Below, piece by piece: positions 4,548-61,757 of a DNA stretch of 64,000 nucleotides. This DNA comes from Hyaloraphidium curvatum SAG 235-1 (taxonomy: Eukaryota > Fungi > Monoblepharomycota). Below the pieces are notes generated by a model. It had not been told where the DNA came from. It made no database searches and saw only the letters and a program-made list of their open reading frames with translations. The stretch is taken from positions 248,001 through 312,000 of the forward strand of contig JAIVFI010000026.1 of assembly GCA_025558095.1 (NCBI GenBank), in the 5' to 3' direction. Every line of letters starts with the position of its first letter. Within the stretch, counting starts at the first letter, position 1. Both the position numbers and the translations under genes were made by a program.

Positions 4548-5591
4548 ATGTCCGCGCCCGTCGTGCTCATCACCGGCTGCTCCGACGGCGGCATCGGCTC
4601 CGGCCTGTGCCTCGCCTTCCGCCGGCGCGGGGCCAAGGTCTACGCGTCGGCCCGCCGCGTCGAGGCGATGGCCGCGCTGCCGCCCGACATCGAGCGCGTG
4701 GAGCTCGATGTCACCAAGCCAGAGTCGATCAAGACCGCCGTGAACGGCATAATTGCAAAGGAGGGGAGGATAGACGTGCTCGTGAACAACGTTGGCAACG
4801 AACCGCGTCGGACGATGGGACGGACTAACGGGCGCGTCGGCAGGCGGGCGGGGGCGGCCTCGCAGGCCCACTGGTGGAGGTCCCGCTCGATTCCATCAGG
4901 GAGCTCTTCGAGATGAACGTGTGGGGCCTCCTTGCCGTGACCCGTGGGTGGAGTCCGCCGGACCGGGGACCAAGGCCCGACCCTCGCGTTCGTGACCCTC
5001 CCAGAGGAAGTCGCGCCCCACATGGTGCGCGCCCGAAAGGGACAGATCGTCAACATGGGCTCCCTCGCCGGCGAGCTCGGCATCCCCTTCGCGGGCGCGT
5101 ACGGCATGTCCAAGTGCTGCGTCAAGTTCGCCTCGGATGCGCTGCGCAGCGAGCTCGCGCCCTTCGGCGTCGGCGTGACGCTGGTCAAGTTCGGGTTCGT
5201 GGAGAGCAACATCGGCAAGAACAGGGAGGTGCGGTTCGGGGACTTTTCCCGGGCCGTGCCGGGGACGCTGTGGAGGGACTGGCTGCCCAGGTTCGACGGC
5301 AAGGCGGCGGGCGGGGGGACGGACAAGCCCATGCCGCAGGAGCAGTTCTGCGACCTCGTTGTCGGGAGGCGTGGGTGGACGCGTTCGGCTCGCTCCATAT
5401 GCCCATCTGACCTTGCGCTCGCCCGGCCAGTGCTGCCCATCTCCCGCGCACCCCGCGACATCTGGGCCGCCCGCCCTTACATGCTGGTCTGGTTCGTCGG
5501 ACTGCTCCCCTGGTTCGTCCAGGACTTTGTGGCCAAGCGGATGTTCGGCCTGTCGGGCAAGGCAAAAGCGATCGAGGGTGCGTCTTCTTGA
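4548..5591 (+). CDS. Short-chain dehydrogenase/reductase, AYR1-like (1-acyl-DHAP reductase family), multi-exon
   Basis: VVLITGCSDGGIG, DVLVNN|AG, GQIVNMGS, YGMSK (YxxxK), LRSELAPFGV; introns at ~4791-4843, ~4945-5005 and ~5362-5430. Confidence 0.88.
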
Positions 5592-5638
5592 GGGTCTCCG
5601 TCGTTGCCAAAAGTGCTATAGAGCCTTCATCCCCTGGA

Positions 5639-6717
5639 TCACCCGCACGTCGTGTTCATGGTCAGCGTCACCCCGCTTCCCTTGAGCACGCTCCACAACC
5701 CCGCGCCGACGGTGAACGCGGTCACCAGCGCCGTCCGCGCCACCCCCGCATCCAACACCGCCCCCGCGAACTTCGCCAGGAACCCTCCCGCCCCCCGTCC
5801 GTGCGCGGCAAGGATGTCAGCGTGCCGGGTCGCCAGCCCCCTTGCGCGGGCGCGCGGGCCGGGTGAGTCGGTGCCGGTCGGGTCGGCGGAGGCGGAGCGC
5901 GAGGCCAGGTCGCGGAGCAGGGATTCGGCCTGCGAGTGCAGGGAGAGGATGTGGCCGACCTGGGAGTTGCTGACGACGTAGTTGGCCACGTCGATTGCCG
6001 TGTACACGGCGGCGTAGAGCAGGGCCACGGAGGTGAACCCGACGACGCAGTTGCCGAAGGCGATCGAGGCGACGCCGATTCCCACGGCGAGGAGCGCGAG
6101 GATGGCGATGTGCGGGCCGGCGACCCCAGTGCGCAGGCGGGTGAGCCAGGTGGGCACGAGAAGGGTGTGCAGGAAGGCGTAGGGCTCCGGGACGAGGATG
6201 CGGGGATCGTTTGTGCAGGCTGGGGGGCCGTCCAGGACAAGGCTTCTGTAGCGGGCGTCGAGGTCGCGGAGGGCGAGGAGGACGGCGCGTCGGTGCAGGC
6301 GCAGGGAGAGGTGCAGCACGGCAGGGTTGGCGGGGATGTTGGCGGCAATGATGATGACCAGGCCGGCCTGGTTGGGCCCGAAGTAGAGCACACGAGGAGG
6401 ATCAGGGACCACGGGGTGGTCCACGACAGGCCGCCGTAGGCGACGGCGGGCATCCAGAAGAAGGCCGTGACGAGAAGCTGGGTTAAGACAAAGCGGGCCG
6501 TGCCTTCCGCAACGCGCAGCGCGGCGACGCGGCCCGGCAGCTTCCCTGCGCAGGCACTTCTCGCGTCCGCAACCGCATCGTCGGAGGGCGCGGGAGACAG
6601 CCCCGGCGGGGGCTGCAGGGGCGCCGGGACCAGCGCCAGCAGCTCGGGGGCAGAGAAAGGCGGGGCTGCAATCGTCTGAATTGCCACCGCCGTGCCCTCC
6701 GGCTTGTCCAGCTCCAT
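5639..6717 (-). pseudogene. Degenerate copy of the 7-TM membrane protein at 8310..9836
   Basis: Highly similar to 8310..9836 but lacks ~143 codons (DARSACAGK versus DARAADP...CPCAAEACAGK) and has a 2-nt TG insertion at ~6389-6393 that shifts frame (LLVCST versus LLVLYF). Confidence 0.75.
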
Positions 6718-7129
6718 TGTTGTGGGGGTGTTTGCTCTGGGACGAGGCCACGAGGCGTCCCGCGAGCCTCGCTGCCCGAACCGCACGTAGAACCGCAGTC
6801 AATATATTGGCGCCACTTTTATCGCCTTGCATAACGCGTGATCGGGCACCATCTACAGTATGGACCCCGCTTCCGCGGCCTGTCGGGCTTGGAGCACCCC
6901 AAGAGCCGACGGGCACAAGTCGAGCGTCGTTGGCATCGTACGCATCGGTGCTGCAGCTGACGTATAACGCGTCGTATGAATGTATTCACCTGAACTGAGC
7001 GCTGCTAGCGATGCCATGGCCACCGTGAGTTGCGTAATCCGTCGGGGGAAGGTGGCTGTGCGGGCGGCGAATCCACGGTCGGCCCGCCAAAGCGCCGTGC
7101 TCCGCGCTCCTTCCCAATCACACGCCACC

Positions 7130-8184
7130 ATGGCCTTTCTCGACCGCTTCCTGCAGTCCCCCGCGGCTTTCGTCCCCGGCCCGGTGCCCGGCGGCGAGCT
7201 GGTCGCCGTACCGACGCGGCATTCGGTGCTCCGCGTGTTTGACTCGGGCCCGCGGGACGTGGAGAAGACGGTGATCCTGTCGCCCGACACGCCTTGTAGG
7301 AGATCCCGCGCGAGCAGCCACGCTCTTTTCTCTGACGACGCGCCGGGACAGGTACCATCGAGCACCACCTCGATGCCCTCGTCCCCGCCCTCCTCGCACG
7401 CGGCTACCGCGTCATTTCCTTCGACATTCCCGGCTCCGGCTTCTCCACCGTCCGCTCCTCCTACGGCTACTCCTTCGACGACCTCGCCGACGTCATCGCC
7501 GACCTCGCCTCCGCCCTCCTCCCCCCCGGCCGCCGCGCCGCGCTGGCATTCACCTGCGCCTCCTCCTTCGCCGCGCTGCTCGCCGCCCGCCGCCGCCCGG
7601 ACCTGTTTTCGCACGTCGTCGTCGCGCAGGTGCCGGAGCTGGCCCAGTCGCAGGCCTGGGTGCGGAGGATGGATCCGTCGGGCACGATGGCGGCCGCGGT
7701 GTGGGGGCAGCTTGCCTTGTGGTGGAACAAGGAAAGGATCGCGAGGGGGTGGTTCGTGAGCGCGCTGCCGAGGGGGTCGGGGATGCTGCCGGACGTGACG
7801 GCCAAGAGCGTCGAGATGCTCAGGAAGGGGGGATCTTACTGTGGGTCCTCGTCTGCGAAGCTCCCGCCTGCATATGGATTGATGCGACTCTTGCGTCCCG
7901 TAGGCCTCGCGAGCATGTTCCAGTCCATCGTCGCCGCGGACGTCGCCGCCCTCGAGCCCCGCCTCGTGACTCCGCAGCCGGCGGGGCTGATGTGGGGCAA
8001 GCGCGACCGCACGCACAGCAAGTCGGACGGCGCGAGCGCGAAAAAGTACCTGCCGAACCTGGTCGCGCACGAGGAGGTCGAGTGCGCGCACTTTCCCGAC
8101 ATCGAGCTGCCGTCAAGGTTCGCGGACATGGTGGACAGGGTGATGCAGACCCCGCCGACCGCGGGAGCGGAGTCCAAACTATAG
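7130..8184 (+). CDS. Alpha/beta hydrolase with Cys at the nucleophile elbow, PTS1-bearing, multi-exon
   Basis: Spliced model: ILSPDTPCTIEHH, YRVISFDIPGSGFS, LAFTCASSF, WGKRDRTH, AHFPDIE; ends ESKL. Confidence 0.82.
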
Positions 8185-8309
8185 ATTCCGAACGATCACG
8201 CGTTTTGCACAGCAGGCTAATTGATGCCAATAGAATGGCTGCAGTGTTATCCGAGGTGCGGGCAGGGACTTCGAGGGGCGCCTCGTCCAGAAAACCACCC
8301 CCGGCCACC

Positions 8310-9836
8310 ATGGAGCCAGACAAGCCGGAGGCCTTTCCAAAGGAGACGCCGACGGTGGCATTTCCAACGATTGCAGCCCCGCCTTTCTCCGCCCCGGAGA
8401 TGCTCGCGCTGTTCCCGGCACCCCTGCGTCCCCCTCCCGGGCTTCTGTCTCCCGCGCCGCCCGACGACGCGCTCGCGGACGCCCGCGCGGCCGACCCCCT
8501 CACGCGGAGCGCGCTGCTCGACGCGCTGCGGCCGTGGCCGCTGCTGCACGCGGAGGTGCGCGCGCAGCAGCTGCTGCTCCCCGTCGCCGCGCGGTTCCCG
8601 CTGCTCTCGCTGGCCGCCAACGCGTGCGGCCTGGCGATGCTCGCGCCGCAGTGGGTCTTTGCCGATCGGCTGGGCCGTTTCTCTCCCGCGGAACTCGGAT
8701 TCGGCACCGCCGTCACCGCGGCGTTCGCGGTCTGGCTGCTCGGCGTCACCGTGTTCCTGCCCCTCAGGGTGTACCGCGCCCGTTTCGCACCCGCCGCCGA
8801 TCTCTCCGGGCATCCGTGGGCCGTCGTCGCGCGGTGGTCGCAGCTGTGCGCCTCGCTGCCCCACTCGCCCCTCCTGCGGCACGATCCTGCGGACGACCTT
8901 TGCCCGTGTGCAGCGGAGGCGTGCGCAGGCAAACTACCGGGCCGCGCCGCGGCGCTGCGCATGACGGAAGGCGTAGCGCGCATCGTCTTCACCCTCCTCC
9001 TCATCAACCCTTTCTACTGGATGCCCGCCGTTACTTACGGGCTCTACTCGTGGACCACCCCCTGGTCGCTCGCCCTCCTGGTCCTCTACTTTCTAACCAA
9101 CATCGTTACCCCGGTCATAGCCATCGCCGCCAGCATCCCCTCCAACCCCGCCGTGCTGCATCTCTCTCTGCGCCTGCACCGCCGCGCCGTGCTCATCACC
9201 ATGCGGGACCTCGCCGCGCGCTACCGGAGCCTGCTCCTCGACGGTCCCCGCGCCGCCCCGGACGACCGCCGCATCCTCGTCCCCGAGCCCTACGCCACGC
9301 TGCACACGCTCCTTGTTCCCACCTGGCTGAACCGCCTCCACACGGGCGTCGCCGGTCCGCATGTCGCGCTGGTCGCGGTCCTCGCCGTGGCCGTGGGCGT
9401 CGCTTCGATCGCCTTCGGCAACTGCGTCGTCGGCTTCACCCTCTTTGCCCTGCTCTACGCGGCCGTCTACACCGCGATCGACATGGCCAACTACGTCGTC
9501 AGCAACTCCCAGGTCGGCAACATACTCTCCCTCCACTCGCAGGCCGAATCCCTGCTCCGCGACCTGGCCTCGCGCTCCGCATCCGCCGACCCGACGGGCG
9601 ACTCCCCCTCCGCGGTGCCCCGCGCCCGCGCGCGGGAGCTGGCACGGGACCACGCCGGCATCCTCGCCGCGCACGCCCGTGGGGCGGGCGGGTTCCTGGC
9701 CAAGTTTGCGGGGGCGGTGGTCGATGCGGGGGTGGCGCGGACGGCGCTGGTCACCGTGTTCACCATTGCCGCCGGGCTGTGGAGCGTGCTGAGGGGGAGC
9801 GGGGTGAGGCTGACGATGAACACGACGTGCGGGTGA
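8310..9836 (+). CDS. Seven-TM membrane protein of an uncharacterised family (candidate 7TMIC/GRL-like)
   Basis: Intronless ORF from ATG 8310; seven hydrophobic segments, a CPCxxxxC loop, LSLRLHRRAV helix, and C-terminal KFAGAVVDAGVARTALVTVFTIAAGLWSVL. Confidence 0.85.
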   Translation: MEPDKPEAFPKETPTVAFPTIAAPPFSAPEMLALFPAPLRPPPGLLSPAPPDDALADARAADPLTRSALLDALRPWPLLHAEVRAQQLLLPVAARFPLLSLAANACGLAMLAPQWVFADRLGRFSPAELGFGTAVTAAFAVWLLGVTVFLPLRVYRARFAPAADLSGHPWAVVARWSQLCASLPHSPLLRHDPADDLCPCAAEACAGKLPGRAAALRMTEGVARIVFTLLLINPFYWMPAVTYGLYSWTTPWSLALLVLYFLTNIVTPVIAIAASIPSNPAVLHLSLRLHRRAVLITMRDLAARYRSLLLDGPRAAPDDRRILVPEPYATLHTLLVPTWLNRLHTGVAGPHVALVAVLAVAVGVASIAFGNCVVGFTLFALLYAAVYTAIDMANYVVSNSQVGNILSLHSQAESLLRDLASRSASADPTGDSPSAVPRARARELARDHAGILAAHARGAGGFLAKFAGAVVDAGVARTALVTVFTIAAGLWSVLRGSGVRLTMNTTCG

Positions 9837-9962: not shown

Positions 9963-10874
9963 CTACGTTGTCCCCGCCGCCGAAACGTCCACGAACCCCG
10001 CGAGCGCGTGCTGCTCGCACAGCCTCCCCGGCCCTCCCGGCGCCCCGTGGGTCGGCCGTCCGCCGCAACCCACGGCCTCGCACTTGCGCCGCGCCTTGGC
10101 CACCATCCCCGGCTCCCTGTGTGCCGCGCACCGGCCCCTCTCGGTGGATTTGCCCTCGTGCTGGTACCACCCGTACAGATTGCAGCCCGGGACGGCGCAC
10201 CGGTTCTGCGTGTCCACCTGGCCGGGCAAGCGGTGCTGCCCGCACCTCGTCGGGCGCACGGGGGCGGCCGGGTGCTCGGGGTCCTCGAAGAAGAAGCTCG
10301 CGCGCTTGGTACACCCTTCGGGGTGGCGGCACTCCTTGTCCCTCCGGGCATGGGTAGCGTCGACCTTGCGGGAGCGCGCCGCGCCGGGCGCCACGGCACC
10401 GACGGCCTCGGGCAGGCGGGCCTGGTCGCCCACGTCCAGTTGGCCGTCCGTTTTGTGCTCCCCGCAGAAGCGCGCCGGCGCCCCCACGTGCGCCCCGAAA
10501 ACGGGCATCTCCCTGCACCCCGGCGCCTCGCAGTGCCGCCGCACGATCGGCACCATCCCCGCCCTCCTGTGCCTTTCGCACACGCCCGACCTCCGCGGCT
10601 GCCCGGGGCGGACGTACCACCGCCCGTTCCTGCAACCTCCGGCGGCGCAGAGCTCGAGCATCGAGATCATCCCGGGCAGCTTGTGCAGCCCGCACCGCAC
10701 GCCGGCGCCCGTCGAGCCCTCGTGGTCGAAGGAGGCCTCGGTGGGGCAGCCCGGGGTGCGGCAGGGGTTGGCGACGGCCGACCGGCGGATCCGCACGCGC
10801 GCCGGGGGCGGGGAAGCGGGCGGCGGGGTCGAGGGGCCGGGGTCGGTTGGTGCGCCGGCGGGCTCGGACGGCAT
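9963..10874 (-). CDS. EsV-1-7-type Cys/His-rich repeat protein (six repeats)
   Basis: Six units of CxxxGC...CxxH(K/R)xxG(M/Q/F), e.g. CEAPGCREMPVFG...ARFCGEHKTDGQLDV, matching the EsV-1-7 repeat pattern. Confidence 0.8.
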   Translation of the reverse strand: MPSEPAGAPTDPGPSTPPPASPPPARVRIRRSAVANPCRTPGCPTEASFDHEGSTGAGVRCGLHKLPGMISMLELCAAGGCRNGRWYVRPGQPRRSGVCERHRRAGMVPIVRRHCEAPGCREMPVFGAHVGAPARFCGEHKTDGQLDVGDQARLPEAVGAVAPGAARSRKVDATHARRDKECRHPEGCTKRASFFFEDPEHPAAPVRPTRCGQHRLPGQVDTQNRCAVPGCNLYGWYQHEGKSTERGRCAAHREPGMVAKARRKCEAVGCGGRPTHGAPGGPGRLCEQHALAGFVDVSAAGTT

Positions 10875-11236
10875 CTCGGGGCAGATTGGAGGGAATGGCG
10901 CGATGTTTGTTTGGAGCGTCTCGGAGTCCGCAGCTTGCATTCCGAGCGAGCTTTACGGCCGCCGGTCCGGCGATGCTGAACAGCAATGATGGATTCCGAG
11001 GGTTGAGCAACTCCTCCAACTCTTCTTTTGCCGCTTGGGCCGGATTTGCAGGGATGGATCGATGTCCGCGGAAGCGGCCACCCTCGGTGGTTTCCTCGCC
11101 ACATCGTGTCGCCCACCGGACCCCACCACCGCTTCCGACGTCCCGCGACCCTTCCGTTCGGGAACGCTCCTTGCGGCGCGTCTCGCGCAGCTCCCGAATC
11201 CGGCCCGCGAAGCGCCGCCCGCCCTCGCCCCCGACA

Positions 11237-13139: not shown

Positions 13140-16100
13140 TCACCCGTTGATCGCGGCGGAGATCTTGTCTGAGGTATACGGCACGCTGATGTGCCTGAAT
13201 TCCTTGATGCCCTTGTCCGCGAGCGCGCTCTGCACGCACTGTTGCACTGCAGAGGTGACCGCGGGCGCCACGCAAAGCGGCGGCTCGCCGCTGGCCTTGG
13301 ACGAGAGCACGCCGCGGTGGAAGTTGCCCTGGAGCAACGTGACGTTGAACTCGCGGGGTGCGTTGGCCGCGATCGGGATCTTGTACTGGAAAACCAAATC
13401 GAGGTAAGCAGACGGATGGTTTGGAATTGACTCAACAACCCACCTCCCACGTCGTGCCCTTACCCCTGAGCTCCCCCGTGTCCTTGTCCATCCCGGCATC
13501 TTCCTGCAGCATGTATCCGAGGCCCATCGTGAGCGCCCCCTCCACCTGGCCAATATCGATGGCGGTGTTGAGGGACCTCGCGGCGTCGTACTCGACGTCG
13601 AAGCGGAGCAGCGTCGTCTCGCCCGTGAGCACGTCGACCTCGACCTCCGCGCCGCCAGCCACCCAAATGGAGTAGCTCGTTACGCCCCGCACCCCGTTGG
13701 TGTTGCCGACGGCCGAAAGGGGCACGCTCTTCATCTCCGCGGCCTTGATGACGGCCTTCCAGCCCGCCTCGGCCACGTCGGCAGGCGACGCGCTCTGGTC
13801 GCCCTCCTTGGCCGCGGCCGTGGCGCCGTCGATGATCTTGGCGACCTCCTCGGGGCCTCCCAGCGCTGCGATGATCTTGTCGACCAGGATCGTGCACCCG
13901 TCGATGACGGCCATCACCGCGCCTTCGGAGCCCATGCTGCCGCCCGTGAACATGTGGAACGGGATGATGCTCGTGTCGTTCCCGGTCGTGCGGATGCGGG
14001 AGAAAGGCACGTGCACGGTGCTCTTGGCCGACACTTTGGTCGCGATCGCCTGCAGCTGCATGGCGGCGCCCTGCTGGATCTTGGTCACGAGCCCCTGCCC
14101 CATCTCGGTGCCCGTGTAATGTATGACGACAGAGCCGTCGCCGTAGATGTTGACGAGGGCGTCGGACCGCAGCGGGGTGACGAAGTAACGGAAGGGCACG
14201 ACGGCGGCCCCGCGCTTGACCGCCTTGTGCTCCTTGTTGAACGCCTCGGTGGCCGCGATCCTGTCGCGCCATCCCTTGCCGTCCATCAGGTTCCCGTACA
14301 GCTTCGGCAGCGTGAACGCCGGGCCCTCCTCCACGCCCTCGGGAATGCTGATCCCGAGCGGTCCCTCGATCCCAAGCGGCAGCTTGAGCGTCTCGGCCGT
14401 GTACAGGTTCGCGTCCCGGATCTTCTGCGAGTGCACGCCGAGCTCGTGGGCCACGCGGTCGACTGCGACCTCTGTGAACCAGCACCCCTCGATCTCGCCC
14501 GGCCCCCGCATGGTGGTCCGCGAAGAGACGTTGGTGCGGGCCACGCGCACGTCGCAGCGGTAGTTGGCCACATCGTAGCACGTGAAGTGGGTCTTGATGA
14601 GCGTCGGCGCCTGGAAGAACGACAGGTCGAGCTTGTATCCCGCAAGGGCGGTGATCTTGAGGTCCGCGCCGAGGATCTTGCCGGTCTTGCCGTCGAACCA
14701 CACCTTGGCCTTCTCCAGGCACTCCTCCCTCCCTCCCTGCATCATGCTGTCCGTCCCGCGGTCCACCACCAGCTTGACGGGCCGCCGCAGGATCGACGCC
14801 GCGAGCGCGACGGTGACGGCCTGCTCCGTGCCCAGCTTGGCCCCGAAGCTGCCCCCCAGCCTCGTCTGCGTGGCCTGGATGTCCGACTCGGGCCTGTTGA
14901 GCACGTACGCGGCCGTCTTGCCGACCATGGTGATCATCTGGATCTGCGAGTGTATGACGATCTTGCCCGCCTCCTCGTAGGCCAGCGCCGACTGCGGCTC
15001 CAGGTACCAGTGCAGCTGCGTCGCCATCTCGGTCGCGTACTCGACGCTCCTCACGTCCCCGCCCGCCGCCGACAGGGCGTCCACGTCGCCGCGCGCCATG
15101 GCCTTGGCCGCGAACATGCCGAGGTCCGTGGCCTCCTTGGGCGCGGCCTCGACGTCGGGGAAGCCGACAAAGACCTTGGAGCGGTCGTCCGGGGTCCACG
15201 CGACGGCGTTCTTCGCGATCCATTTGGCGATGGCGTTGGCCCGCGCCTGCGTCTCGGCGCACACGAGGCCGATCGGCTCGCCGACCCAGTTGATGCGGCC
15301 GTCCTTGGCCCAGATCGGGACCAGCGGCAGGGGCAGGCCGATGACGGCGGCGCCCTGCGGGATGTCGAGGTTGAACCTTCCGAGCGCGGCGACGGAATCG
15401 TAAGTGAGGAAGGTCACGAAGCCCGGCTGCTTGGAGGCCCGGATCTTGGCGTGGTCGACCTCGAAGCTGCCCTGCGGGATCGGGCTGTTGACGAAGGCCG
15501 CAAACACCGCGCCGGCGGGGGCGGGCACGTCCGTGGTGTACTGCGCGGTGCCGCAGGTGTGGTGGATGCCGTCCGCGCGCGGGATCGCGCGGCCGACGGG
15601 GCCGAACGAGGCCGCGTCGGGGGCCGTGGGCTCGGCGCCGGGGCGCGGCATGTCGGCGGGTCTGACGAAGGAGATGGTGGATTTCGGCACGGGCCTCTGC
15701 GGGCCGATGGCGGCCTTGGCGAGGGCGGCGGCGTCCTTCGCGACGTCGGTGAAGGCCTTGAGGGTGAAGGCTTTCACGAGCGCCGCGCGGTGCGAGTTCT
15801 TGTAGCTGCCTTCGATCTTGACCGCTGCGGCCGCGACCTGGGCCGCCCACTCCGCCGTCGGGTTCCCGAGCGCGCCGTCGGCGTCGGTCGGCGGCGACAC
15901 GGGCTTGCCCTTGACGCCGTCAAAGGTGACGACCTGCGGGGCGTTGCGCCCGGGCACGTCCGTGACGCCGACGTTGCCGAACGCGGCCGTCGCGGACGCG
16001 ATCTTGCCGTCCTCGAGCTCGAAGAAGAAGGACGAGTTGACGATGGCGTGGGCGTTGACGCAGCGGATGGCCGTGCGGTGGTTGATGAGCCGGTGCGAGC

Positions 16101-17462
16101 CCTTGCCAACCTCGAACGAGACCGAGGTGAGGACATTGTACTCGAGGGGCGCTGTCGGCGAGGCGACGTAGGTCGACAGTGGCTCGGACTTCTCGGCCGC
16201 CTTCCCGTCGGTGCCGATGTGGGTGAAGTGGGCGACGGCGCCCAGCGCGACGAGGGGGGTGACGGTGTCGCTGCACGCCGAGCAATGAGCCCTTGCGAAC
16301 AAGCGCCGGGAACGATCTTCTGGCATACCTGGCGAACCCATTCTCCTTGGCCATGGTGATGTTGCCAGCAATGCTGGCCACGTGGCGCACCTGCTCGTTG
16401 GCGACCTTGTTGAGCGTGCGCGCGAGCGCGCTGAGCACCTGGCGCTGGCTCTTTTCGGCCTCGTCTGCGCTGCCCTCGGCTGGCGCGGCGTCGTGCAGCT
16501 TCTTGATGAGCTCCGAGATGCTGAGCGTGGGCCCGAAGGAGACCTTGAGGCCGCCATCTTCCTTGGACGCGCTGAACGTCTTGAAGTCAGGGATCCCGCT
16601 GATGTCTGCGACCGCCAGGGCGGTGGGCAGGTCGTCCTTGTAGACCCCTGCCGAGGTCTGCGAGCACACCACGCGCACGAAGTCCTGCGCCCGGCCCGCC
16701 GACTTGGCCAGCAGCTCAAACAGCTGCGCCGGGGTCGACACGCGGTGGTACGTGAGCGTGGACGACTTGAAGGTGGCCCCGGCGTCCGCCGGGGCGTCGC
16801 CGCGGAACTCGGCGGGGAAGGCCTTCTCGACGACCGACTGCACGTAGGCGCCCAGCGGCACGGGGTTCTCGAGCACCTTGTCTTCGGCGCCGTCGCAGAT
16901 GGCGATCGCGTCGCGCACGTCCGAGTCAGAGGCGAACGAGAGCGCGGATCTACGAAATCGCGTCAGATGACACACAATCAGGGGCCCGCGAGGCAACCCA
17001 CGCGACGATGGGGCGGTATCCCGTGCAGCGGCACAGGTTCCCGTCCAGCCTGTCCTCGATGTCGGCCATCTTGGCCCCGGGGTCCTCGAGGAACACGCCC
17101 GACACCTGAACGGTCCACCCGGGCGTGCAGAAGCCGCACTGCGACGCGTTGAGGTCGGCCATCCGGCGCTGCAGCGGCGACGGCTCGCGCGGGGAGCCGA
17201 GGCCCTCGACGGTGACGACCGAACAGCGGTGCAGCGTGGCGACCTTGCGGAGGCACGCGTTGGCGGTGACGCTCACGACGCGGCCGCCGTCGGCGTCCCA
17301 TCTGCTGAGCAGCACGGTGCACGCGCCGCAGCCGCCCTCGCCGCAGCCGACCTTCGTGCCGGTCAGCCCGGCCGTCTCGCGGAGGAACGCCGAGAGCGAC
17401 ACGGACGGGTCGGCGGAGGGCAGCTTGACCACCTTGCCGTTGACAGCGAACACGAGCGCCAT
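13140..17462 (-). CDS. Molybdo-flavoenzyme, aldehyde oxidase/xanthine dehydrogenase family, multi-exon
   Basis: 2Fe-2S motifs GTKVGCGEGGCGACTV, SQCGFCTPG, GNLCRCTGYRPI; FAD domain QVRHVASIAGN; Moco domain QLHWYLEPQ, RLGGSFGAK, GTEMGQGL, IDIGQVEG, SSKASGEPP. Confidence 0.95.
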
Positions 17463-28995: not shown

Positions 28996-31449
28996 CTATG
29001 ACGAAAGCCTCTTGCCGGCCCTGGACCGGTCCCCGTCGGCCTGCTTGGCGAACGAGACCGAGGGCGAGGTCGACCGCTTGGGCTTGGGCGTCGGCGGGAC
29101 GAGGGCCTCGGCGACGGCCTGCGGGGACGCGGCGCGCTTCCTCCTGTCGATCTGACAGACGGGGCACAGTCAGCTTCCTCCACAACCAGAAGCGTCGCCT
29201 CGACTCACCCTCGCACGCGCCTTCTTGAGCAGCTCCTCCCTTGACAGCAACCTCGCCGCCCCTTCTTCCTCCTCCTCCAACCCCGGTGCGTCCCAATCCT
29301 CCCTCGTCACCGAAGGCGTCTCGAACGGCACCCAACCGCCCCTCTTCTCCCCCTCGCCCTGCTTCTCCCTCGCCGGCGTCGCCGCCCTCGACCCCTTGCT
29401 GCTGACCCTCCCCATCGCCTCCTCCGCATGCCCTTCCTCCGCGGCCCCGGTCCGGGGCGGCGACGACCCGATCCCGAAGAACGCCGAGCTCCTCCTCCTC
29501 CCCCTCGGATGCCCCCCTTCCCCGCCCTCGGCCGCCGACGACGTCCCCGGCCTGCTTCCCCCCCTCCCGTACCCCGCCGTCCCCGGCCTGCTCCCCACCC
29601 CACCCGCGCCGGGCGCGGGCGGCACCGGCGCCCCAATCAACCTCTCCTTGAGCGCCAGCAGCTCCAGCGCCTTCTCCTCCGCGAAGCGGAGCACGTCCAT
29701 CGCTGCCTCTGGGGTGGAAGCGAGCTGCAGCGCCGCGGGGGGGACGAACCGCACGCGCGCGGGGACGATGGGGGGGAGGGAGGAGAGCTTGGTGCAGAGG
29801 GCGCGGCAGGCGGAGAGGAAGGAGGAGAGGGAGTCGCGGTGCAGGGAGAGCTGGGATTGGAGGTGCTCGGTACGGGAGGTGGTGGATGCGAGTGCGCGCT
29901 GCGGGACGGTGAGTCGGCATGCGTTCGGGGCGGCAGGCTGTCGGGCTGAACCAACCTGAAGGCGATCGCGGCGTTCGTCCTCGCCCTCCTGCTTGATCCG
30001 CCTCTTCTTGTCGGCCTCGTCGATCTCGGCGCGCATGGCGGCGAGCTTGGCGCGGTGGCCCGCAGCCTGCATCCCCAGCTCGTTGACGTAGCCGAACAGG
30101 CTGTACCCACGGTGCTCCAGCTGCACGAACCGCGCGACGAGCTGCTTCGGGTCGCCGAGATCGCCTTGCCCGCTGGCACCGGCGTCCTCCCACGCGGCCA
30201 CCATCTCCTTCAGCTCGTCGAGTGCCTCGGTGTAGACCTCGACCGTCTCGCGCGGCGTGCGGGCGACCAGCATGGCCGGGATAGACCCGCTCGCGCGCTC
30301 CAGCTCCCTGCGCTCCCGCTCCAGCTCGACCTTCTTCTCGCTGCGCTCGCGCAGCTTCTCGGCCAGGAAGCTCCTCAGCTCCTCGTCGGCCTCCCTGCGC
30401 CTCCTGTTCTCCCTCGCCTCCCTCTCGAACGCCTCCCTCTCCCTCGCCTGCACCTCCCTCAGCCTCAGCAGCTGCACCTGGCTCGCGTCCCTCGCGGCGT
30501 TGGCCGCGTTGGTCGCCTGCACCAGCTCCCCCGAGCGCCGCTTGATCTCCCCCGCCTCGCGCTCGAGCCGCCTCCACGCCTGGGTGTAGGCCACGAGCTC
30601 GTGCCGCACCGAGGTGACCTGCTCGCGCAGGCGGCGGCCGGCGATGAGGAGCTCGTTGTATTTTTCCGTGGCTTTGTCGAGGCGGGATTCGGCGGAGCGG
30701 AGCTGCGAGGCCAGGGCCTGGGATTCGGAGGTGAGGGAGTGGGTGCCCGAGGCGAGCTGGCGGAGCTGGGCCATGCGGGACTGCAGCGAGGAGATGGATT
30801 GGTTGGTCTCGTTGACCGAGGACGTCAGGGTGCTGATTTTGGAGGTGTAGGACGCTGGAAACCGTGGTCAGCTCTGACCGAATCTGAAGTTGGTTCGTCT
30901 GCGGCCGCCCACCGATTTCCCGCTTGACGGTCTCGAAATCCGCCGGCCGGCTTTTGACCTTCATCTTGGTCAGCACCTCGACCTGCCGCTCCAGCTCGGC
31001 GTTCTCGTCCCGCATGGTAGCGATGGCCGACTTTTGCTTGGCGATGGTCTGCGTCGCCGAATCGGCGTACGAGCGCCGCTCGGCTTCCAGGACCTTGTAG
31101 GCCCGCTGGAGGCGCCGGAGCTCTTGCTCCACTGTCCAACAAAAACAAAAAAGGGCGAGAAGTTGCCGTTGGGCGACAGCGTGCCGGGGCTCCGAGTTAG
31201 GCATGGGTTGTTCCCGGGAGAGCTCGGCCGGCACGCACCAGCGCCTCCCCGTCCTTCGACCTCCTCCCCATGCTCCTCCTCGTCAATCCGGTCCACATCC
31301 CTCTCCCGCTCCCGGTAGAGCTCCCTCGCCGCGCTCAGGGCGGTGTCGTCCTTGCTCCTCCTCTCCTTTTTCGGCGACGGCGGCTCGGAGCCCGGCGCCG
31401 AGACCGTGCCCCGCGCCCGGGAAAACAGGGCATGGAGCGCGTTTGGCAT
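28996..31449 (-). CDS. Outer dynein arm docking complex subunit (ODAD1/CCDC114/CCDC63-like), multi-exon
   Basis: ELRRLQRAYKVLEAERRSY, RLDKATEKYNELL...LREQVTSVRHE, LVARFVQLEHRGYSLFGYVNEL; extensive coiled coil. Confidence 0.8.
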
Positions 31450-31790: not shown

Positions 31791-33329
31791 ATGGCGGAAA
31801 AGCTTTTCACGCCGCGCGAGTGGATTGCTTTGTTCCCGGCGCAGCCCCCCGACGACGGGGACGCGACGTTCCTCGGAGATGCTCCGCCCGACCCCGCCGC
31901 GGCTTTGCGCGCCGCCGAGCCCCTGACTTTCGATGTGCTTCTTTCTGCGGTGCCTGATCCTCTGCTCCGGTGGCAGATGCGTGCAGCGTGGTCGCTGGAG
32001 CCGCTATCGGTTCGCATTCTGTTGCGGTACGGAGCGCTCTTCTCACTGGCTCTGGTACTTTGCGGCTCCGTCTGGACATTGAACACGGGTGTCTATGGCG
32101 GGCCACAGATCACCGCGGCGTTTACGGGGTACTCCGGCGTTGCGGCGCTCACGATGGCGCTGTTCGTGGCAACGCGCTTCCGCGAGGACGGCTGGGCCGC
32201 GCTCTACCGCCCATTCCGCAGGCCTGTAGCCACGACGGCACCCGCCGCCGCGCCTTTGGATGTGAGCACCCACCCCTTTGCCGGCCTCGCACGCTGGTGC
32301 CAGCTTGTCGGGCTTTCTCCAGCATTTTCGGGCTATGCCGACCTGCTTTCCGCTCCCGAAGCCGGCCGCCTCGTCGAGCACCGCGATGGTGACCGCGATT
32401 GCCCGTGCGCGCTCCCATCGTGCATGGGTGGCGCCCCGGGCTCGATAGGGCTTCACCGGATCGCGGCGACCGCAATGTACTTCGCCGTGGAGCTGGTCGA
32501 ATGGCTTCTGCTCGTGTGGTCTCCCGTTGTTGTGCTCTCATCGAGAACCTGGACTTCGCGTTGGGCAGCGCCCACCGCTGCCGTCTACCGTGGGTCGGCG
32601 CTCGCGCCTAGCGCTTTTGCGCCCGTCACTGATCTTGTGCCCGCACCAGTATTCGTAGTTGTTGTTCATTCGGTGCCGACTGCCGTGGGAATCACGACGA
32701 CCGCCGTGCCAGCCCTCACCCTTGCCAGGAAGTTGCACCGCCGCGCAGTAAAGCTCGCCCTGCAAGACCTCCTCTCCCGGTGCTCCTCCCCCACCCCGTT
32801 GGCCGATCCCAGCCCCGACGAACCGTATGTCCAGCTGCATCTTGCTCTCGCCGCCACCTACGTTACGCAGCTCCGCTTCGTCTCCAACGGCCAGGCTGTG
32901 GTCCTCACCGCCGGAGCCGCCATCGTCGTTGCCGCCGCCGCCAACGCCGCTGTTGGGCAATGTATTCCCGCCTACCTAGTCCTAATGGCGTGCTACCTCA
33001 CCCTTGGGCCTTCGTGGCACATGTCCTTCGTGGCGGTCTGGAACAGCAGCATCGCCTCGGTTACGGACCTCTACCTCGGGGCGCGGACCGCTCTCGCCCT
33101 CCTCGGACCCCGGTCTGCGCACCCCGAGACCGTTGAGCGGCACATGCACGTGCTCGAGCTGCTTGCCGATGGCATGACCGCGCGCCGGGGGAGATTCCTC
33201 GGGTTCGCGGTCGGACTGGGAACCGTGCGGACCTACCTGGCAACGCTCTTCACTGTCGCGCTTGGGCTGTGGACGCTGTTGCGCGGGGCGGGGATTGCGT
33301 TCGTGCCGGATTCGGTGTGCCCGGGATAG
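31791..33329 (+). CDS. Seven-TM membrane protein, divergent paralog of 8310..9836
   Basis: Shared motifs F(T/S)xxExxALFP, HP(F/W)AxxARWxQL, CPCxxxxC, LHRRAV, EPYxxLH, and GRFLGFAVGLGTVRTYLATLFTVALGLWTLLRG; a likely short intron near 32590-32649. Confidence 0.85.
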   Translation: MAEKLFTPREWIALFPAQPPDDGDATFLGDAPPDPAAALRAAEPLTFDVLLSAVPDPLLRWQMRAAWSLEPLSVRILLRYGALFSLALVLCGSVWTLNTGVYGGPQITAAFTGYSGVAALTMALFVATRFREDGWAALYRPFRRPVATTAPAAAPLDVSTHPFAGLARWCQLVGLSPAFSGYADLLSAPEAGRLVEHRDGDRDCPCALPSCMGGAPGSIGLHRIAATAMYFAVELVEWLLLVWSPVVVLSSRTWTSRWAAPTAAVYRGSALAPSAFAPVTDLVPAPVFVVVVHSVPTAVGITTTAVPALTLARKLHRRAVKLALQDLLSRCSSPTPLADPSPDEPYVQLHLALAATYVTQLRFVSNGQAVVLTAGAAIVVAAAANAAVGQCIPAYLVLMACYLTLGPSWHMSFVAVWNSSIASVTDLYLGARTALALLGPRSAHPETVERHMHVLELLADGMTARRGRFLGFAVGLGTVRTYLATLFTVALGLWTLLRGAGIAFVPDSVCPG

Positions 33330-40152: not shown

Positions 40153-40468
40153 GTTGCGGCCGGGGGCGGGAGGTCGGGCGCGGAGTGGGGGAGCGTGGGA
40201 GACGGGTGGCGCGCCCACCCGCGGTGGCAACCCCGCGCGGGACGACCCGCCTCTCGTCTACCAAGGAACGATGGGAATCCCGTCAATTGATTCGAATCCC
40301 GGGACTGCTTAGCTCCTTAGCTTCTGGAGATAGCTTGGAGCGGCTACGACGCTGGTGAACGAAGCAGTGATGCAGACGCGGCCCCCAGCTATCGGAGACA
40401 CGGAAGCGGGATGAGTCAGTTCGAGTCACCAACCTCACCTCCCTAAAACACTCAGAAGCAAAGCAAGG

Positions 40469-42415
40469 ATGCCCGTTGCTACAGACACATCTCCTCCCTC
40501 GGACCGCATCCCCGTCGAGACCTACTGGCCGACGGTTGGGGCGTTCGCCGCGGCGAGCGGGTCGCCGCCCGAGGAGTCCGCCTCCGCGCTCCCGCTCTCC
40601 GCCCTCGTCGAGCGCGCCGCCTCGCTGCTCGCCGCCAATCAGCACTCGACGCTGCCGGCGGTCAGCGACAAGACAAAGCTGCGCGGGTCCATCGACGCCC
40701 TTCTTACTGTGCGGCACGCCGAGGAGCTCGAGGCCGGCACAGAAGCCGCCGAGGCGGTGGACGCCCTGCTCGCCGCCGACGCGCAGAAGCTCAGGAAAGA
40801 AGGCCGCCTGGTGGACGTGTCTTCGCTCAAGCCGATGGATGGCGAGCCGCGGCTCTTCCTGCACAAGGGCGATATCACGCTTCTGTCGGACCTCGGTCAC
40901 CCCGCCCCCTCCCTCGGCATAGTCAACGCCGCCAACCATGACCTCATCGGCTGCCACCGGCTCGACCACCCGTGCATCGACAACCAGATCCACCTCGCCG
41001 CCGGGCCCCTCCTGCGGGACGCCTGCGCCGCGTACTCGAAAAAGTTCCGCGGATCCCACGGCGAGCCCGCGGGGACCGCCGTGGTCACCCCTTCCTTCTC
41101 CCTGCGTCATCGAGGCATCACTCACGTGCTGCACACCGTCGGGCCCAAGGTCTCGGGGACGATCAGGCCGCACGACCCCGAGAGGCTCGAGGGGTGCTAC
41201 CGTTCCCTGCTCGACGCCTCCCGCGAGGCCGGGATCAGGAACCTGGCCATCTGCGCCGTATCGACGGGTGTGTTTGGCTACCCGGTCAAGCCCGCCGCGG
41301 AGGTGGCTGCAAGGGCGGTGCGGGGCTGGCTCGCCGAGAACGCCTCGGAGCTCCCCGCGGGCGTGCTCGAGCGGATCGTGATCGATTGCTTCTCCAAGTC
41401 CGACACGGAGCACTACGCCACCGCGTTCGGCGTGCCGGTGCCGGAGGAGCCCGCGCCGCCCCCGGAGCTCGCCGCCGAAAACCCGCACTTCTACACCACC
41501 CCTCCGCACGGCTTGCTCCCCGACTCGCTCGACCGCGCGGCGGCGATCCTCAAGGACGCCGACGCGGTGATCATCTCCGCCGGCGCCGGCCTTTCCGCCT
41601 CGGCCGGGCTGGACTACCTCGACGGCGCGCTGTTCAAGGCCAAGTTCCCGTGGATGCACTCGCACGGCCTCCGCAAGATGTACGATTTCATTGGCTGGGA
41701 TGACTGGCCCGATGACGGGAGAGCCATGTGGGCGTACCTGCTCTCGCAGATCGCCCTGGAGGCGTCGTGGCCAGCCTCCAAGGCGTACCGCCTCGCCCGC
41801 GAGATCGCCGCCGGCTCCCCGGCCCCGGAATCGTCCGGCCGGCCGTACTTTGTCTTCACCACCAACACCGACGGCTTCTTCGCCCTGAACGGCTACCCCC
41901 CCGAGCTCCTCTGCGAGGCGCAGGGCCTGCTCTCCCGCTTGCAGTGCGCCCTCCCGTGCCGCCACGACGCCGTCTGGCCGGCCGCCGTCTTCTCCGCCGC
42001 CCTGGCGGACGTCGACCCCTCCACGGGCGAGATCCGCGACCCCGCGCTGGTTCCCAAGTGCAAGTTCTGCGGCGGCGCGTGCAGGCCCAACATCAACGAC
42101 GGCGACGCGTGGCTCGGGGAGGCGTACCTCCGTCCCCGCGCCGCGTTCGCTTCTTTTGTCCGCAACCAGCGTTCCGCGGGGGCCAAGGTGGCGATCCTCG
42201 AGCTGGGGATGGGGTTCAACTCGCCCGCGGTGGCGAGGCTGCCGATGGAGGCTATCTGCGCCGCGTGGGGACAGAAGGGATGGTGCCGGATGGTGAGGGT
42301 CAACCAGGAGAGGTGGGAGGTGCCGCGGCCGCTGGCGGAGGCGGGGAGCGTGGGGATCGGGGCGGATGCGGGGGAGGCGCTGCGGGAGCTGCACGGCAGG
42401 GTGTTTCGGGCCTAG
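40469..42415 (+). CDS. Zn-macrodomain fused to a class M sirtuin (SirTM; Mfs1-like)
   Basis: Macrodomain GDIT, IVNAAN, GCHRLDHPCIDNQIH (Zn loop), HTVGP, STGVFGYP. Sirtuin SAGAGLSASAG, FTTNTDG, EAQG (no catalytic His), CxxxC/CxxC, ILELGMGFNSP. Intronless. Confidence 0.92.
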   Translation: MPVATDTSPPSDRIPVETYWPTVGAFAAASGSPPEESASALPLSALVERAASLLAANQHSTLPAVSDKTKLRGSIDALLTVRHAEELEAGTEAAEAVDALLAADAQKLRKEGRLVDVSSLKPMDGEPRLFLHKGDITLLSDLGHPAPSLGIVNAANHDLIGCHRLDHPCIDNQIHLAAGPLLRDACAAYSKKFRGSHGEPAGTAVVTPSFSLRHRGITHVLHTVGPKVSGTIRPHDPERLEGCYRSLLDASREAGIRNLAICAVSTGVFGYPVKPAAEVAARAVRGWLAENASELPAGVLERIVIDCFSKSDTEHYATAFGVPVPEEPAPPPELAAENPHFYTTPPHGLLPDSLDRAAAILKDADAVIISAGAGLSASAGLDYLDGALFKAKFPWMHSHGLRKMYDFIGWDDWPDDGRAMWAYLLSQIALEASWPASKAYRLAREIAAGSPAPESSGRPYFVFTTNTDGFFALNGYPPELLCEAQGLLSRLQCALPCRHDAVWPAAVFSAALADVDPSTGEIRDPALVPKCKFCGGACRPNINDGDAWLGEAYLRPRAAFASFVRNQRSAGAKVAILELGMGFNSPAVARLPMEAICAAWGQKGWCRMVRVNQERWEVPRPLAEAGSVGIGADAGEALRELHGRVFRA

Positions 42416-42960
42416 GCGGCCACAACGGTGGAGGACGTCAAAAAACGTGTTCGCTTGGTGTGCGTTCGATGGTGGAAAAAGGGAAAAGATACAGCACCAC
42501 GTATTCCCGTGTGGTCTCCCACCACAGTACTGACGTGGCTCATACCAGCTTAACTTCAGTGGTCTGACGAGAACTGGTGCTTTCTGGTAGATATGGCCGT
42601 ATCTGAACACCAATGATGCCCGGAGCAATATAACGCCGACGGGCAAAAGGACGACTAGCCTTGGACGCGGCGCGGCCTTGGGAGGCACCGATCCCCCGGC
42701 GGCGCCACGCCGCCACTCCGCCGCACCTTGCCGACTCCCCGTGGGCCATCGCCACTGCCAAACGGCAGCGGCTGTCTATGTTCCTTCCTCCCGACTTGGC
42801 GGCGCCCAATTTGCCAGTCGGACCCTCCTCCCGCGTCGGTGACTCCTTCCCCGCCGGAACCCACTCCTCCGCCGAATCATTCCCATCCCCGGGCGAGTTC
42901 TCCTTCCCCGTCGGCCTCCTCGGTTCCCCGCGCCCGCCGTCGGCCGAGCGGTGCCGCACG

Positions 42961-44082
42961 ATGCCCATCTCGGATTACATCCTGTCCGTGCCCAAGGTCG
43001 AGCTGCACGTCCACCTGGAGGGCTCGATGCCCCCCGAGACGATGCTCGCCCTCGCGGCGCGCCACGGGATACAGCTGCCCGCCGACGACGTCCCGGGGCT
43101 GCGGAAATGGCTCGACTTCCGGGACATGCCGCACTTTGTCGCCATCTACTTCACCATCTCAAAGTGCCTGCAGACGCCCGACGACATCGAGCTGCTGGGC
43201 CGGGACTTTCTGAAGCAGCAGGCCAGGCAGAACATCTGGTACAGCGAGGTCACCTTCACGCCCTACACGCACTGGCACCAGAAGCGGATACCCTTTGCGG
43301 AGCAGCTGGAGGCGCTCAACCGCGCGCGCCGCTGGGCCGAGACGGAGCTCGGCGTGACGATGAGGTTTATTTTTGACATCAGCAGGGAGGTCAGCCCCGA
43401 CAAGGGCCTGTGGACGGCCGACGCCGTCGTAAGGCACTTCCGGGACCCGGACTCCGGCATCGTGGCGCTCGGATTAGGGGGATACGAGCCCGCCCACCCC
43501 GCGCACAAGTTTGGCGAGGCCTTTGCCCGCGCCCAGGCTGCCGGCGTGCCCATCGTGCTTCATGCAGGCGAGCACGGCGGCCCCGAGAGCATCCGCGCCG
43601 CTCTCGCCTTGGGCTCGCTGCGGATCGGCCACGGGGTCCGGGCCGCGGAGGACGAGGAGCTTGTGGCGGAGCTCGTGCGGCGGAGGGTGCCGCTCGAGAT
43701 CAGCCCGACGAGCAACATCCGCCTGAAGGTCGTCGGGAGCCTGCAGGAGCACCCGGTGCAGAAGCTCATCGAGGCCGGGGTGGCGGTGACCATCAACAGC
43801 GACGACGCGGCCATGTTCAACACGAGCCTCACGCAGGAGTTTCTGCAGTGCGCCGAGGCGTTCGGCTGGGACATGGACCAGGTGGATGCGCTGATCCTCA
43901 ACGCGGCCCAGGCGGTCCTTCTGCCGCCGGACGAGAGGGACGCGCTTGTGAGCAGAATTCGATCGGGGCTGAGGCAGAGGGATCCACAGGACTGGGATCA
44001 GGCGGGGACGGTCGTGCGGAAGACGGGACACAAGCCGGCTGACGAGGTTACGGGCACGGGCGCGGCGTCCGTTCCTGCGTAG
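42961..44082 (+). CDS. Adenosine/adenine deaminase
   Basis: PKVELHVHLEGS, HAGE, RIGHG, LEISPTSN, TINSDD; intronless. Confidence 0.93.
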   Translation: MPISDYILSVPKVELHVHLEGSMPPETMLALAARHGIQLPADDVPGLRKWLDFRDMPHFVAIYFTISKCLQTPDDIELLGRDFLKQQARQNIWYSEVTFTPYTHWHQKRIPFAEQLEALNRARRWAETELGVTMRFIFDISREVSPDKGLWTADAVVRHFRDPDSGIVALGLGGYEPAHPAHKFGEAFARAQAAGVPIVLHAGEHGGPESIRAALALGSLRIGHGVRAAEDEELVAELVRRRVPLEISPTSNIRLKVVGSLQEHPVQKLIEAGVAVTINSDDAAMFNTSLTQEFLQCAEAFGWDMDQVDALILNAAQAVLLPPDERDALVSRIRSGLRQRDPQDWDQAGTVVRKTGHKPADEVTGTGAASVPA

Positions 44083-60308: not shown

Positions 60309-61757
60309 TCAGACCGTGCCCTCAATATCCTCCATCCGTCCCGCGACGCCCACAGCCAGGCTCCCCGCCCCTTCAAAGTCCCCGAACTGGTCCAGCTCCT
60401 CCAGCAAGCCCACCGCAAACAGCCCCGCCCTCTCCCCATCTCCCACGTCCGACATCAGCGCCACCGCCTCCTCCTCGGACGCGCCACCACGCTTCTCCCC
60501 CCGGAAGCGGTCCCACAGGAACCTCCCGTCCGGCGACACCCACGCCCACGCCAGCGCCGCGCAGGCGAGCGCCGCCATCCCCACCGCCCCCGCGCCCAAC
60601 CACGCCGCGCGCTCGTACGCGAGCGTCCCCAGCGCCGTCCCGGCGAACGTGCCGAGGTACGCGAGCACCATGTACACAGCGTTTGCGCGGGACTTGTGCC
60701 CCGGCAGCGCCGAAAACACGCGGAGCTGGTTGCCGACCTGCTGCAGCTGCCTCCCCAGGTCCGTCAAAAAGGCACAGGCGAAGAGGGCGGCGAGGTGCCG
60801 CGTGCCCGAGGCCAGCGCGACGGTCCATGCAAGGAACTGCGCGGTGATACCCAGTGCAACGAGTTTGTGCGGGGGAAAGGGGAGGATGCCGGCCAAGGGG
60901 GCGGCGAGGATGCCGCCCATCCCCGCCAGGCCGAGGAGGCCGATGGTCGACACCGGGAGGCCGTATGCGGGGGATCCCATGAGGTACACCGAAGTGGTCC
61001 AGTACGAGGCCATCGAGAGGAAGCAAAAGAAGGCGATAGCGGCGGATTGCTGCAGCACGGCGCGGGTGCCGGCCAGCTTCAGGCTGGAGAGGATGAGGCG
61101 CGGGTAGCGCACAACGCTGCCCTCCTCCGCCGGCGGGATCTCGGGGAAGAAGAGGATCAGCAGCGCGAGCACGGCCACCTGGGTTGCCACGGCTACGCCG
61201 AACGAGGTGCGCCACCCCAGCGCGTCCGCGACGAGGCCCGAGACCACCCGCCCGTAGAGCACGCCGACCTGCGTGCAGCCGACCGTCAGCCCGACGTCGA
61301 CCGACATCCGGTTCGAGAGGTCCGCGACGGTGGGCACGACGATCTGGGGCAGCACGGTGAAGAGGCCGAGGAGGAAGTGGAAGGCCTGGAGGGCGGCCAT
61401 GCCCTGTGCCAGCGCGCAGAGGGCTGTGAGCACCGAGCATAGCGACGTCAGGATGAGAACCAGCGGCCGCCTGGGGATCACATCGCCGAGCGGCGTGATC
61501 AGGAGGAGCCCCAAGCAGTATCCCGCCTGCGCCAGCGCGACGAGCGACGACGCCGCGGTCTTTGTCGCTCCGAACTGCTCGACATAGTCGTTCAGCAGCG
61601 GCTGCGAGATGTACAGGTTCGACACGCCGACGAGGCTCGCGACGCCGAACAGCAGCACGAGCGGCCGCGGGATGCCGCCCCCTCGCGCGAGCCGCGGAAC
61701 GGTGCGGCCGACGATGGGCAGCCAGTGGGAGAGGAACGTGCCGTCGGGCGCGGCCAT
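60309..61757 (-). CDS. MFS transporter
   Basis: VSNLYISQPLL, QAGYCLGLLLITPLGDVIPRR, GRVVSGLVADALGWR, SRANAVYM; about 12 TM; intronless. Confidence 0.9.
   Translation of the reverse strand: MAAPDGTFLSHWLPIVGRTVPRLARGGGIPRPLVLLFGVASLVGVSNLYISQPLLNDYVEQFGATKTAASSLVALAQAGYCLGLLLITPLGDVIPRRPLVLILTSLCSVLTALCALAQGMAALQAFHFLLGLFTVLPQIVVPTVADLSNRMSVDVGLTVGCTQVGVLYGRVVSGLVADALGWRTSFGVAVATQVAVLALLILFFPEIPPAEEGSVVRYPRLILSSLKLAGTRAVLQQSAAIAFFCFLSMASYWTTSVYLMGSPAYGLPVSTIGLLGLAGMGGILAAPLAGILPFPPHKLVALGITAQFLAWTVALASGTRHLAALFACAFLTDLGRQLQQVGNQLRVFSALPGHKSRANAVYMVLAYLGTFAGTALGTLAYERAAWLGAGAVGMAALACAALAWAWVSPDGRFLWDRFRGEKRGGASEEEAVALMSDVGDGERAGLFAVGLLEELDQFGDFEGAGSLAVGVAGRMEDIEGTV

Follow-up and report, generated by a model that had tools for sequence, protein, structure and literature searches.

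Outside animals and plants, seven-transmembrane ion channels (7TMICs), the class of the odorant receptors (ORs) of insects and of their gustatory receptors (GRs), are recorded in the literature at one to six genes per species, and no function is known for any microbial one; plant and algal DUF3537 families are reported to hold 4-12 members. Fungal 7TMICs are described as single genes in two Spizellomyces species, together with unspecified chytrid and blastoclad entries. The gustatory receptor-like proteins (GRLs) of Spizellomyces punctatus and S. palustris are chytrid 7TMIC candidates, identified because their sequences resemble GRLs and DUF3537 (Benton et al. 2020, PMC7746228), and SpunGRL1 keeps a single position out of four in the motif of the seventh transmembrane segment (TM7; PMC7746228), a motif termed diagnostic but not definitive in the literature. 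Here we describe an intronless gene at 8310..9836 (plus strand) of a 64,000-nt stretch of DNA (the window; about 67% GC) from Hyaloraphidium curvatum (Monoblepharidomycetes), whose genome spans 31.9 Mb in 55 contigs, and the large family of membrane proteins to which its product belongs. Text searches of the literature found no report of this family and none linking Hyaloraphidium to 7TMICs.

The evidence supports a large, real and selected gene family with 7TMIC architecture. That the gene belongs to a genuine, expanded seven-transmembrane (7-TM) family is virtually certain; that the family has the 7TMIC fold is probable, judged from structural models, and solved OR, GR and Orco structures are the best full-length matches of these models. 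Shared ancestry with 7TMICs is somewhat favoured, while a role as ligand-gated channels or in chemosensation is put forward tentatively, by analogy, at rather less than even likelihood. Taken as a whole, with the tetramer, pore and ligand-pocket roles proposed below, this reading has a modest balance of probability in its favour.

Three family loci were found in the window by a family hidden Markov model (HMM) run on its six-frame translation, and no others:
8310..9836, plus strand: intact intronless gene (the target), 508 aa and stop, translated without internal stops, family HMM E 2e-163
31791..33329, plus strand: intact paralog, 512 aa, 30% identical to the target, with a 20-residue insertion near TM4
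5639..6717, minus strand: damaged paralog without the equivalent of aa 62-203 and with a +2-nt frameshift

Open reading frame (ORF) translations and the HMM agree on these places, which are the three copies given by the initial annotation, a reading of the DNA made from its letters; its assignment to an early-diverging fungus is likewise borne out by the host. The same annotation called the family unannotated, which stands only insofar as the genes have no assigned function: public gene models exist, the target product being identical to a 508-aa model named only 'hypothetical protein', and the closest public proteins are 'hypothetical protein DFJ74DRAFT_...' entries of H. curvatum. The two intact copies align end to end (30% identity, E 2e-36). 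In the damaged copy the first 54 codons match aa 1-61 of the intact protein and the next codon matches aa 204; at this junction, near 6555, a deletion has removed the Cys motif together with TM1 and TM2, and a 2-nt insertion near 6390 puts the reading frame out. Its other 249 codons are 82% identical to the target. Between these two copies the synonymous divergence (dS) is about 0.4 and the ratio of nonsynonymous to synonymous divergence (dN/dS) 0.28-0.35; purifying selection thus acted on both during most of the period after their duplication. The G+C content at third codon positions (GC3) of family ORFs, 0.83-0.89, is usual for coding frames in this DNA.

The family extends far beyond the window. 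A genome search with the single protein gave 88 scored matches of 724 first-look candidates (E 0 to 9.5e-4), and a profile search gave 89 of 877, none weaker than E 7e-40, numbers that chance comes nowhere near; the scored matches were all positive and, with few exceptions, each consisted of one uninterrupted reading frame of about 500 codons. A HMMER profile of 27 paralogs was compared with a set of 1.84 billion representative proteins; with clusters defined at 50% identity, it hit 461 of them at E <= 1e-3, of which 291 reached E <= 1e-30, and all ten of the profile matches sampled across the ranking came from H. curvatum. At the DNA level, a 33-place pattern for D-x2-C-P-C-x4-C occurred at 257 genome sites, against 4 for the reversed control; 56-59% of members carry this exact spacing, which therefore gives about 430-450 loci. 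The agreement of this motif-based count with the cluster count leaves little room for matches from other organisms. Together these numbers suggest about 430-460 intronless paralogs, or roughly 2% of H. curvatum DNA, in line with the large repertoire foreseen in the initial annotation, and the family is detectable only in this species. Word-index protein searches with the whole protein, the profile or the C-terminal region returned only the query and one paralog, the index being swamped by Ala/Pro-rich candidates, and therefore have no bearing on the taxonomic range.

Motif sites often lie 2-20 kb apart on both strands (e.g., C1:703987-732037 and C5:783992-816931), a spacing that indicates tandem arrays. 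Pairs of cluster representatives have a median identity of 26%, which marks the expansion as an old and deep one. The 1.2-kb flanks of 26 copies have no similarity in common, which rules out a repeated mobile unit. Within 1.5 kb of retrieved copies there are additional family ORFs on the opposite strand (E 3e-17 and 2e-12), both on the minus strand and one of them downstream of the copy that it accompanies; they form head-to-head or tail-to-tail pairs. Two truncated copies on separate contigs, C30:69277-70380 and C48:24826-25929, have the same scores, and identical motif sites at C10:808992 and 813173 stand in inverted orientation 4 kb apart; these reflect either very recent duplications or assembly redundancy. 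The birth-and-death turnover proposed earlier is consistent with the tandem clusters and the pseudogene.

Transcription was assessed with a public run whose contigs cover the stretch and skip three GT..AG introns in neighbouring genes; being spliced at GT..AG sites, the run is RNA-derived. These contigs, which give neither strand nor expression level, span 8886-9661 of the target without differences from the window and thus show that part of the gene is transcribed; the damaged copy also has a contig, at 5959-6299. One contig matches the target from 8938 onwards and carries 255 unlike letters upstream of that point, and no AG precedes 8938; its end there may be a join with another transcript in the assembly, not a splice site.

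The anatomy of the 508-aa product was derived from hydropathy, AlphaFold2 helices and, for residue conservation, charge and loop statistics, 108 full-length family members:
8310..8597, plus strand: predicted cytoplasmic N-terminal region, aa 1-96; motifs F-[ST]-x-x-E-W-L-A-L-F-P and DPA..LR..PLT conserved in the alignment
8598..8756, plus strand: TM1 (aa 97-119), 5-residue outer loop and TM2 (aa 126-149), from hydropathy, DSSP and loop lengths
8757..8957, plus strand: inner loop 1 (aa 150-216), modelled as a structured domain (per-residue model confidence, pLDDT, 91-98)
8880..8924, plus strand: H191-x6-C198-P-C200-x4-C205 cluster in inner loop 1, 99-100% conserved
8958..9131, plus strand: TM3 (aa 217-242), 8-residue outer loop 2 and TM4 (aa 251-274), from hydropathy, model helices and loop lengths
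9132..9239, plus strand: predicted cytoplasmic helical continuation of TM4, aa 275-310, with LSLRLHRRAV; modelled helix 280-310
9288..9419, plus strand: TM5 and its cytoplasmic extension, helices 327-342 and 349-370 of the AlphaFold2 model
9423..9425, plus strand: C372 in the 4-residue outer loop 3, 98% conserved
9432..9587, plus strand: TM6 and a long cytoplasmic extension, modelled as a single 52-residue helix, aa 375-426; N399 98% conserved
9612..9695, plus strand: predicted cytoplasmic helix, aa 435-462, at the TM7a/anchor position of the AlphaFold2 model
9696..9797, plus strand: break and TM7b, aa 463-496, candidate pore lining, F-L-G468-F-x-V-D...R477-T...T485-V-A-V-G-L-W-S-V-L-R495
9798..9833, plus strand: 12-residue external tail with G498 and C507, the latter 95% conserved

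Family-averaged hydropathy peaks coincide with modelled helices 97-119, 126-149, 217-242, 251-274, 349-370, 375-397 and 474-496, so that the seven hydrophobic segments read from the letters are recovered in both intact window copies. The other elements then noted are also found: the loop after TM2 holds C198-P-C200-x4-C205, joined by the equally conserved H191; the 'LSLRLHxRA' stretch (R288, R292 and A293 88-95% conserved) sits on the helix continuing TM4; the helix after TM6 is long; and the last segment is split into a helix at 435-462, a non-helical stretch at 463-472 and a helix at 473-496. The paralog at 31791..33329 shares the seven-helix layout, with TM4-6 projection helices at 285-332, 345-389 and 394-441 and a TM7 split into helices 445-463 and 476-499. 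In the N-terminal region, P36 is 93% conserved and a helix modelled at 77-93 takes the S0 position.

Lys and Arg in the segment flanks average 13.9 on the proposed inner side and 1.16 on the outer side, which predicts an N-terminus inside, as had been proposed, and a C-terminus outside; a GPCR-like (G protein-coupled receptor) N-out topology is not indicated by this charge bias. The inner loops have median lengths of 79, 74 and 66 aa, the outer ones only 5, 8 and 4 aa, and the tail has 12 aa. TM7b is the most conserved helix (entropy 1.65 bits versus about 3.0 bits for TM1-6), as would be expected of a pore-lining TM7b and a variable pocket built from TM1-6. By analogy, H191, C198, C200 and C205 may form a family-specific cytoplasmic metal (Zn) site. 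A strand at 372-374 is modelled beside a strand at 500-502 near C507, and C372 and C507 would form a putative extracellular disulfide, consistent with both residues facing the extracellular side.

AlphaFold2 models were built without templates, from alignments of 27 paralogs for the target (pLDDT 87.2, predicted TM-score, pTM, 0.87) and 75 for the paralog at 31791..33329 (pLDDT 89.8, pTM 0.89). The AlphaFold2 weights are older than the first 7TMIC structure (August 2018 release), which makes memorisation of the fold unlikely. In exhaustive structural searches 7TMIC chains take the top ranks for these two 30%-identical paralogs, and all 7TMIC clusters of the PDB give colinear alignments of 295-345 residues that extend from S0 as far as the C-terminal end of TM7b; OR and GR alignments begin at model residues 67-79 and reach the OR/GR C-terminal end at TM7b. 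Unrelated matches span only 120-190 residues, and the top 50 of either search contain no GPCR, rhodopsin or other 7-TM class. A GPCR identity was rejected on this result and on the predicted N-in topology. The topological features by which the literature recognises 7TMICs are present in the family: seven TMs, a predicted N-in/C-out orientation, inner loops longer than outer ones, TM4-6 projections and a split TM7. Weak leads toward 7TMIC relatives came from two further sources. An ESM Atlas shape search among predicted models returned eukaryotic hypothetical membrane proteins, including a Cnidaria cluster (TM 0.55/0.68), Chlorophyta (0.56) and Arthropoda (0.50), and DUF3537 accounted for 4/30 nearest clusters by language-model features (score 0.90).

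Several results weigh against this interpretation. Foldseek matches to the PDB were not significant (E 0.15-0.2), with TM-scores of 0.24-0.41 to solved structures, although the best of them were nonetheless BmGr9, AgamOR28 and Gr64a; no solved 7TMIC gave a TM-score >= 0.5 or a significant Foldseek match. Both models derive from paralog alignments of one genome. Pfam searches of the two window proteins and 75 members at E <= 10 gave no match to 7tm_6, 7tm_7, DUF3537/PF12056 or any other family, and a profile search of PDB sequences returned chance hits only, with no OR or GR. From the TM7 motif (T/S)Yhhhhh(Q/K/E)(F/L/M), in a register picked by sequence (T485, V, A-V-G-L-W, S, V/I/L), only T485 (96%) and the hydrophobic last position are kept. 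No RNA contig covers 8304-8691, the 5' third of the target, and the contigs are strandless. The literature moreover describes H. curvatum as a fungus that is atypical and non-flagellated (PMC8371127), which makes classical chemotaxis a less than obvious role. The 7TMIC layout asserted in the initial annotation holds for topology; the structural match (TM <= 0.41) is no stronger than for the weakest among accepted 7TMIC candidates, and the conserved TM7 motif reduces to its Thr. Searches of the genome with Pfam DUF3537 and 7tm_7 were empty, but their prokaryotic control genomes were equally silent, and these searches therefore weigh neither way.

The explanation that we prefer is a 7TMIC-fold protein whose subunits would form tetramers through a cytoplasmic bundle of the long TM4-6 extensions and TM7a, with TM7b, the conserved helix, lining a cation pore at the centre. 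TM1-6, a highly variable bundle, would constitute a ligand pocket differing among paralogs, giving a large sensory repertoire; the His/Cys3 cluster of inner loop 1 could bind metal, the C372-C507 disulfide would lie outside the cell, and the repertoire may be renewed by local duplication, divergence and pseudogenisation. A bolder version, in which about 450 ligand-gated 7TMIC channels, each with a family-specific cytoplasmic metal-binding module perhaps coupling the channel to intracellular regulation, arose independently in a unicellular chytrid reported to be non-flagellated, we consider rather unlikely.

The strongest competing explanation, although improbable in our estimate, keeps the 7TMIC fold and drops the chemosensory ligand-gated repertoire: the proteins could be intracellular or endoplasmic reticulum membrane proteins, scaffolds, or a self/non-self or surface-variation system. 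The 4-8-residue outer loops and the near absence of N-glycosylation sites from the outer segments would suit it, as would the unconserved pore motif, the host reported as non-flagellated, and the PHTF and DUF3537 proteins, which also have no known function. On the other hand, variable TM1-6, a conserved TM7b and hundreds of diverged paralogs under purifying selection are the pattern of a chemoreceptor repertoire. ORs hold their ligand in an intramembrane pocket, as in the MhOR5 structure, and short outer loops are compatible with such a pocket.

A second alternative denies homology altogether and sees a lineage-specific seven-helix family whose OR/GR likeness is convergent or due to imprecise helix arrangement by AlphaFold. 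It could draw on the non-significant Foldseek values, the TM-scores below 0.5 and the lack of profile-level sequence signal, but would have to account for the colinear 295-345-residue alignments that head the rankings for two paralogs while unrelated matches stop at 120-190 residues, for the absence of other 7-TM classes from the top 50, and for a topology that agrees with the literature description throughout; we regard it as unlikely. Finally, cargo of a transposable or selfish element, or spurious ORFs of GC-rich DNA, in which long chance ORFs are many, might be suspected from intronless, multi-copy frames in a genome whose other genes have introns, but these readings were rejected as highly improbable on the dN/dS of about 0.3, the unlike flanks and the coding-like GC3, together with position-specific residue conservation, a confidently predicted fold and RNA contigs over part of the gene.

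Other genes of the window include the following:
13435-16962, minus strand: xanthine dehydrogenase / aldehyde oxidase molybdopterin domain protein
40415-42412, plus strand: macro-domain protein
42634-44079, plus strand: adenosine deaminase
60312-62039, minus strand: major facilitator superfamily (MFS) transporter

The family copies are intronless and are flanked by intron-bearing neighbours, namely an alpha/beta-hydrolase gene at 7085-8217 (plus strand; GT..AG introns 7295/7352 and 7840/7904) and a short-chain dehydrogenase at 4941-5636 (plus strand; intron 5370/5431). Directly downstream of the target, at 9966-10952 (minus strand), is a gene for a protein with five cysteine-rich EsV-1-7 repeats (PF19114, E 3e-39); its coverage by RNA contigs is deeper than that of the target, and these contigs extend to about 9696, over the target 3' end. 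Directly upstream of the paralog at 31791..33329 lies a multi-exon gene reaching to about 31234, whose ORF at 29173-30867 (minus strand) strongly matches the central coiled coil of ODAD1 (PF21773, E 1.5e-34), from the docking complex of the outer dynein arm. ODAD1 is part of the axoneme, and the host is said to be non-flagellated. The loss of flagellar parts in H. curvatum is treated as unconfirmed in the literature, and an intact ODAD1-like gene beside one copy hints that there may still be some room for a flagellated stage and hence for chemotaxis.

If the preferred interpretation is correct, massive 7TMIC expansion would not be unique to animals, since about 450 members, diverged, selected and transcribed at least in part, would occupy some 2% of the DNA of a fungus. 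A tractable set of intronless genes would then be available for asking what the ancestral fold does, as regards channel activity, ligand range and oligomer state, and one would have to ask what there is for a non-motile planktonic fungus to sense with so many receptors. On the bolder version given above, the repertoire would match or exceed in size the combined OR and GR sets of insects, and no sensory-receptor-like family known in fungi would be larger.

Compared with described systems, the family differs from the PHTF proteins, Class-B 7TMIC candidates with one or two genes per genome and very long loops (PMC9998090, 10.1101/2023.08.30.555482). The Spizellomyces GRLs, compared by description, resemble it in keeping one of four TM7 motif positions; they are single-copy per genome, in contrast to the roughly 450 copies of H. 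curvatum, for which no sequence link was detectable. Plant and algal DUF3537 proteins share a degenerate TM7 motif and the language-model proximity noted above, and beside them may be set the chlorophyte membrane-protein cluster, a top-ranked Atlas shape match; the H. curvatum family differs in having no PF12056 match. The fullest likeness is to the insect GRs and ORs (BmGr9, DmGr43a, Gr64a, MhOR5, AaegOR10, AgamOR28, ApOR5 and Orco 6C70), with which it has in common seven TMs, a predicted N-in orientation, inner loops that are long and outer ones that are short, far-reaching extensions of TM4-6, a split TM7 with TM7b the most conserved part, and a large, divergent paralog repertoire in tandem clusters. 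It departs from them in sequence (6-11% identity, no Pfam 7tm_6/7tm_7 match, only the TM7 Thr kept), and is set apart by a longer structured N-terminus, an inner loop 1 that is structured and carries the invariant His/Cys3 cluster, two conserved outer Cys residues, intronless genes and a unicellular fungal host.
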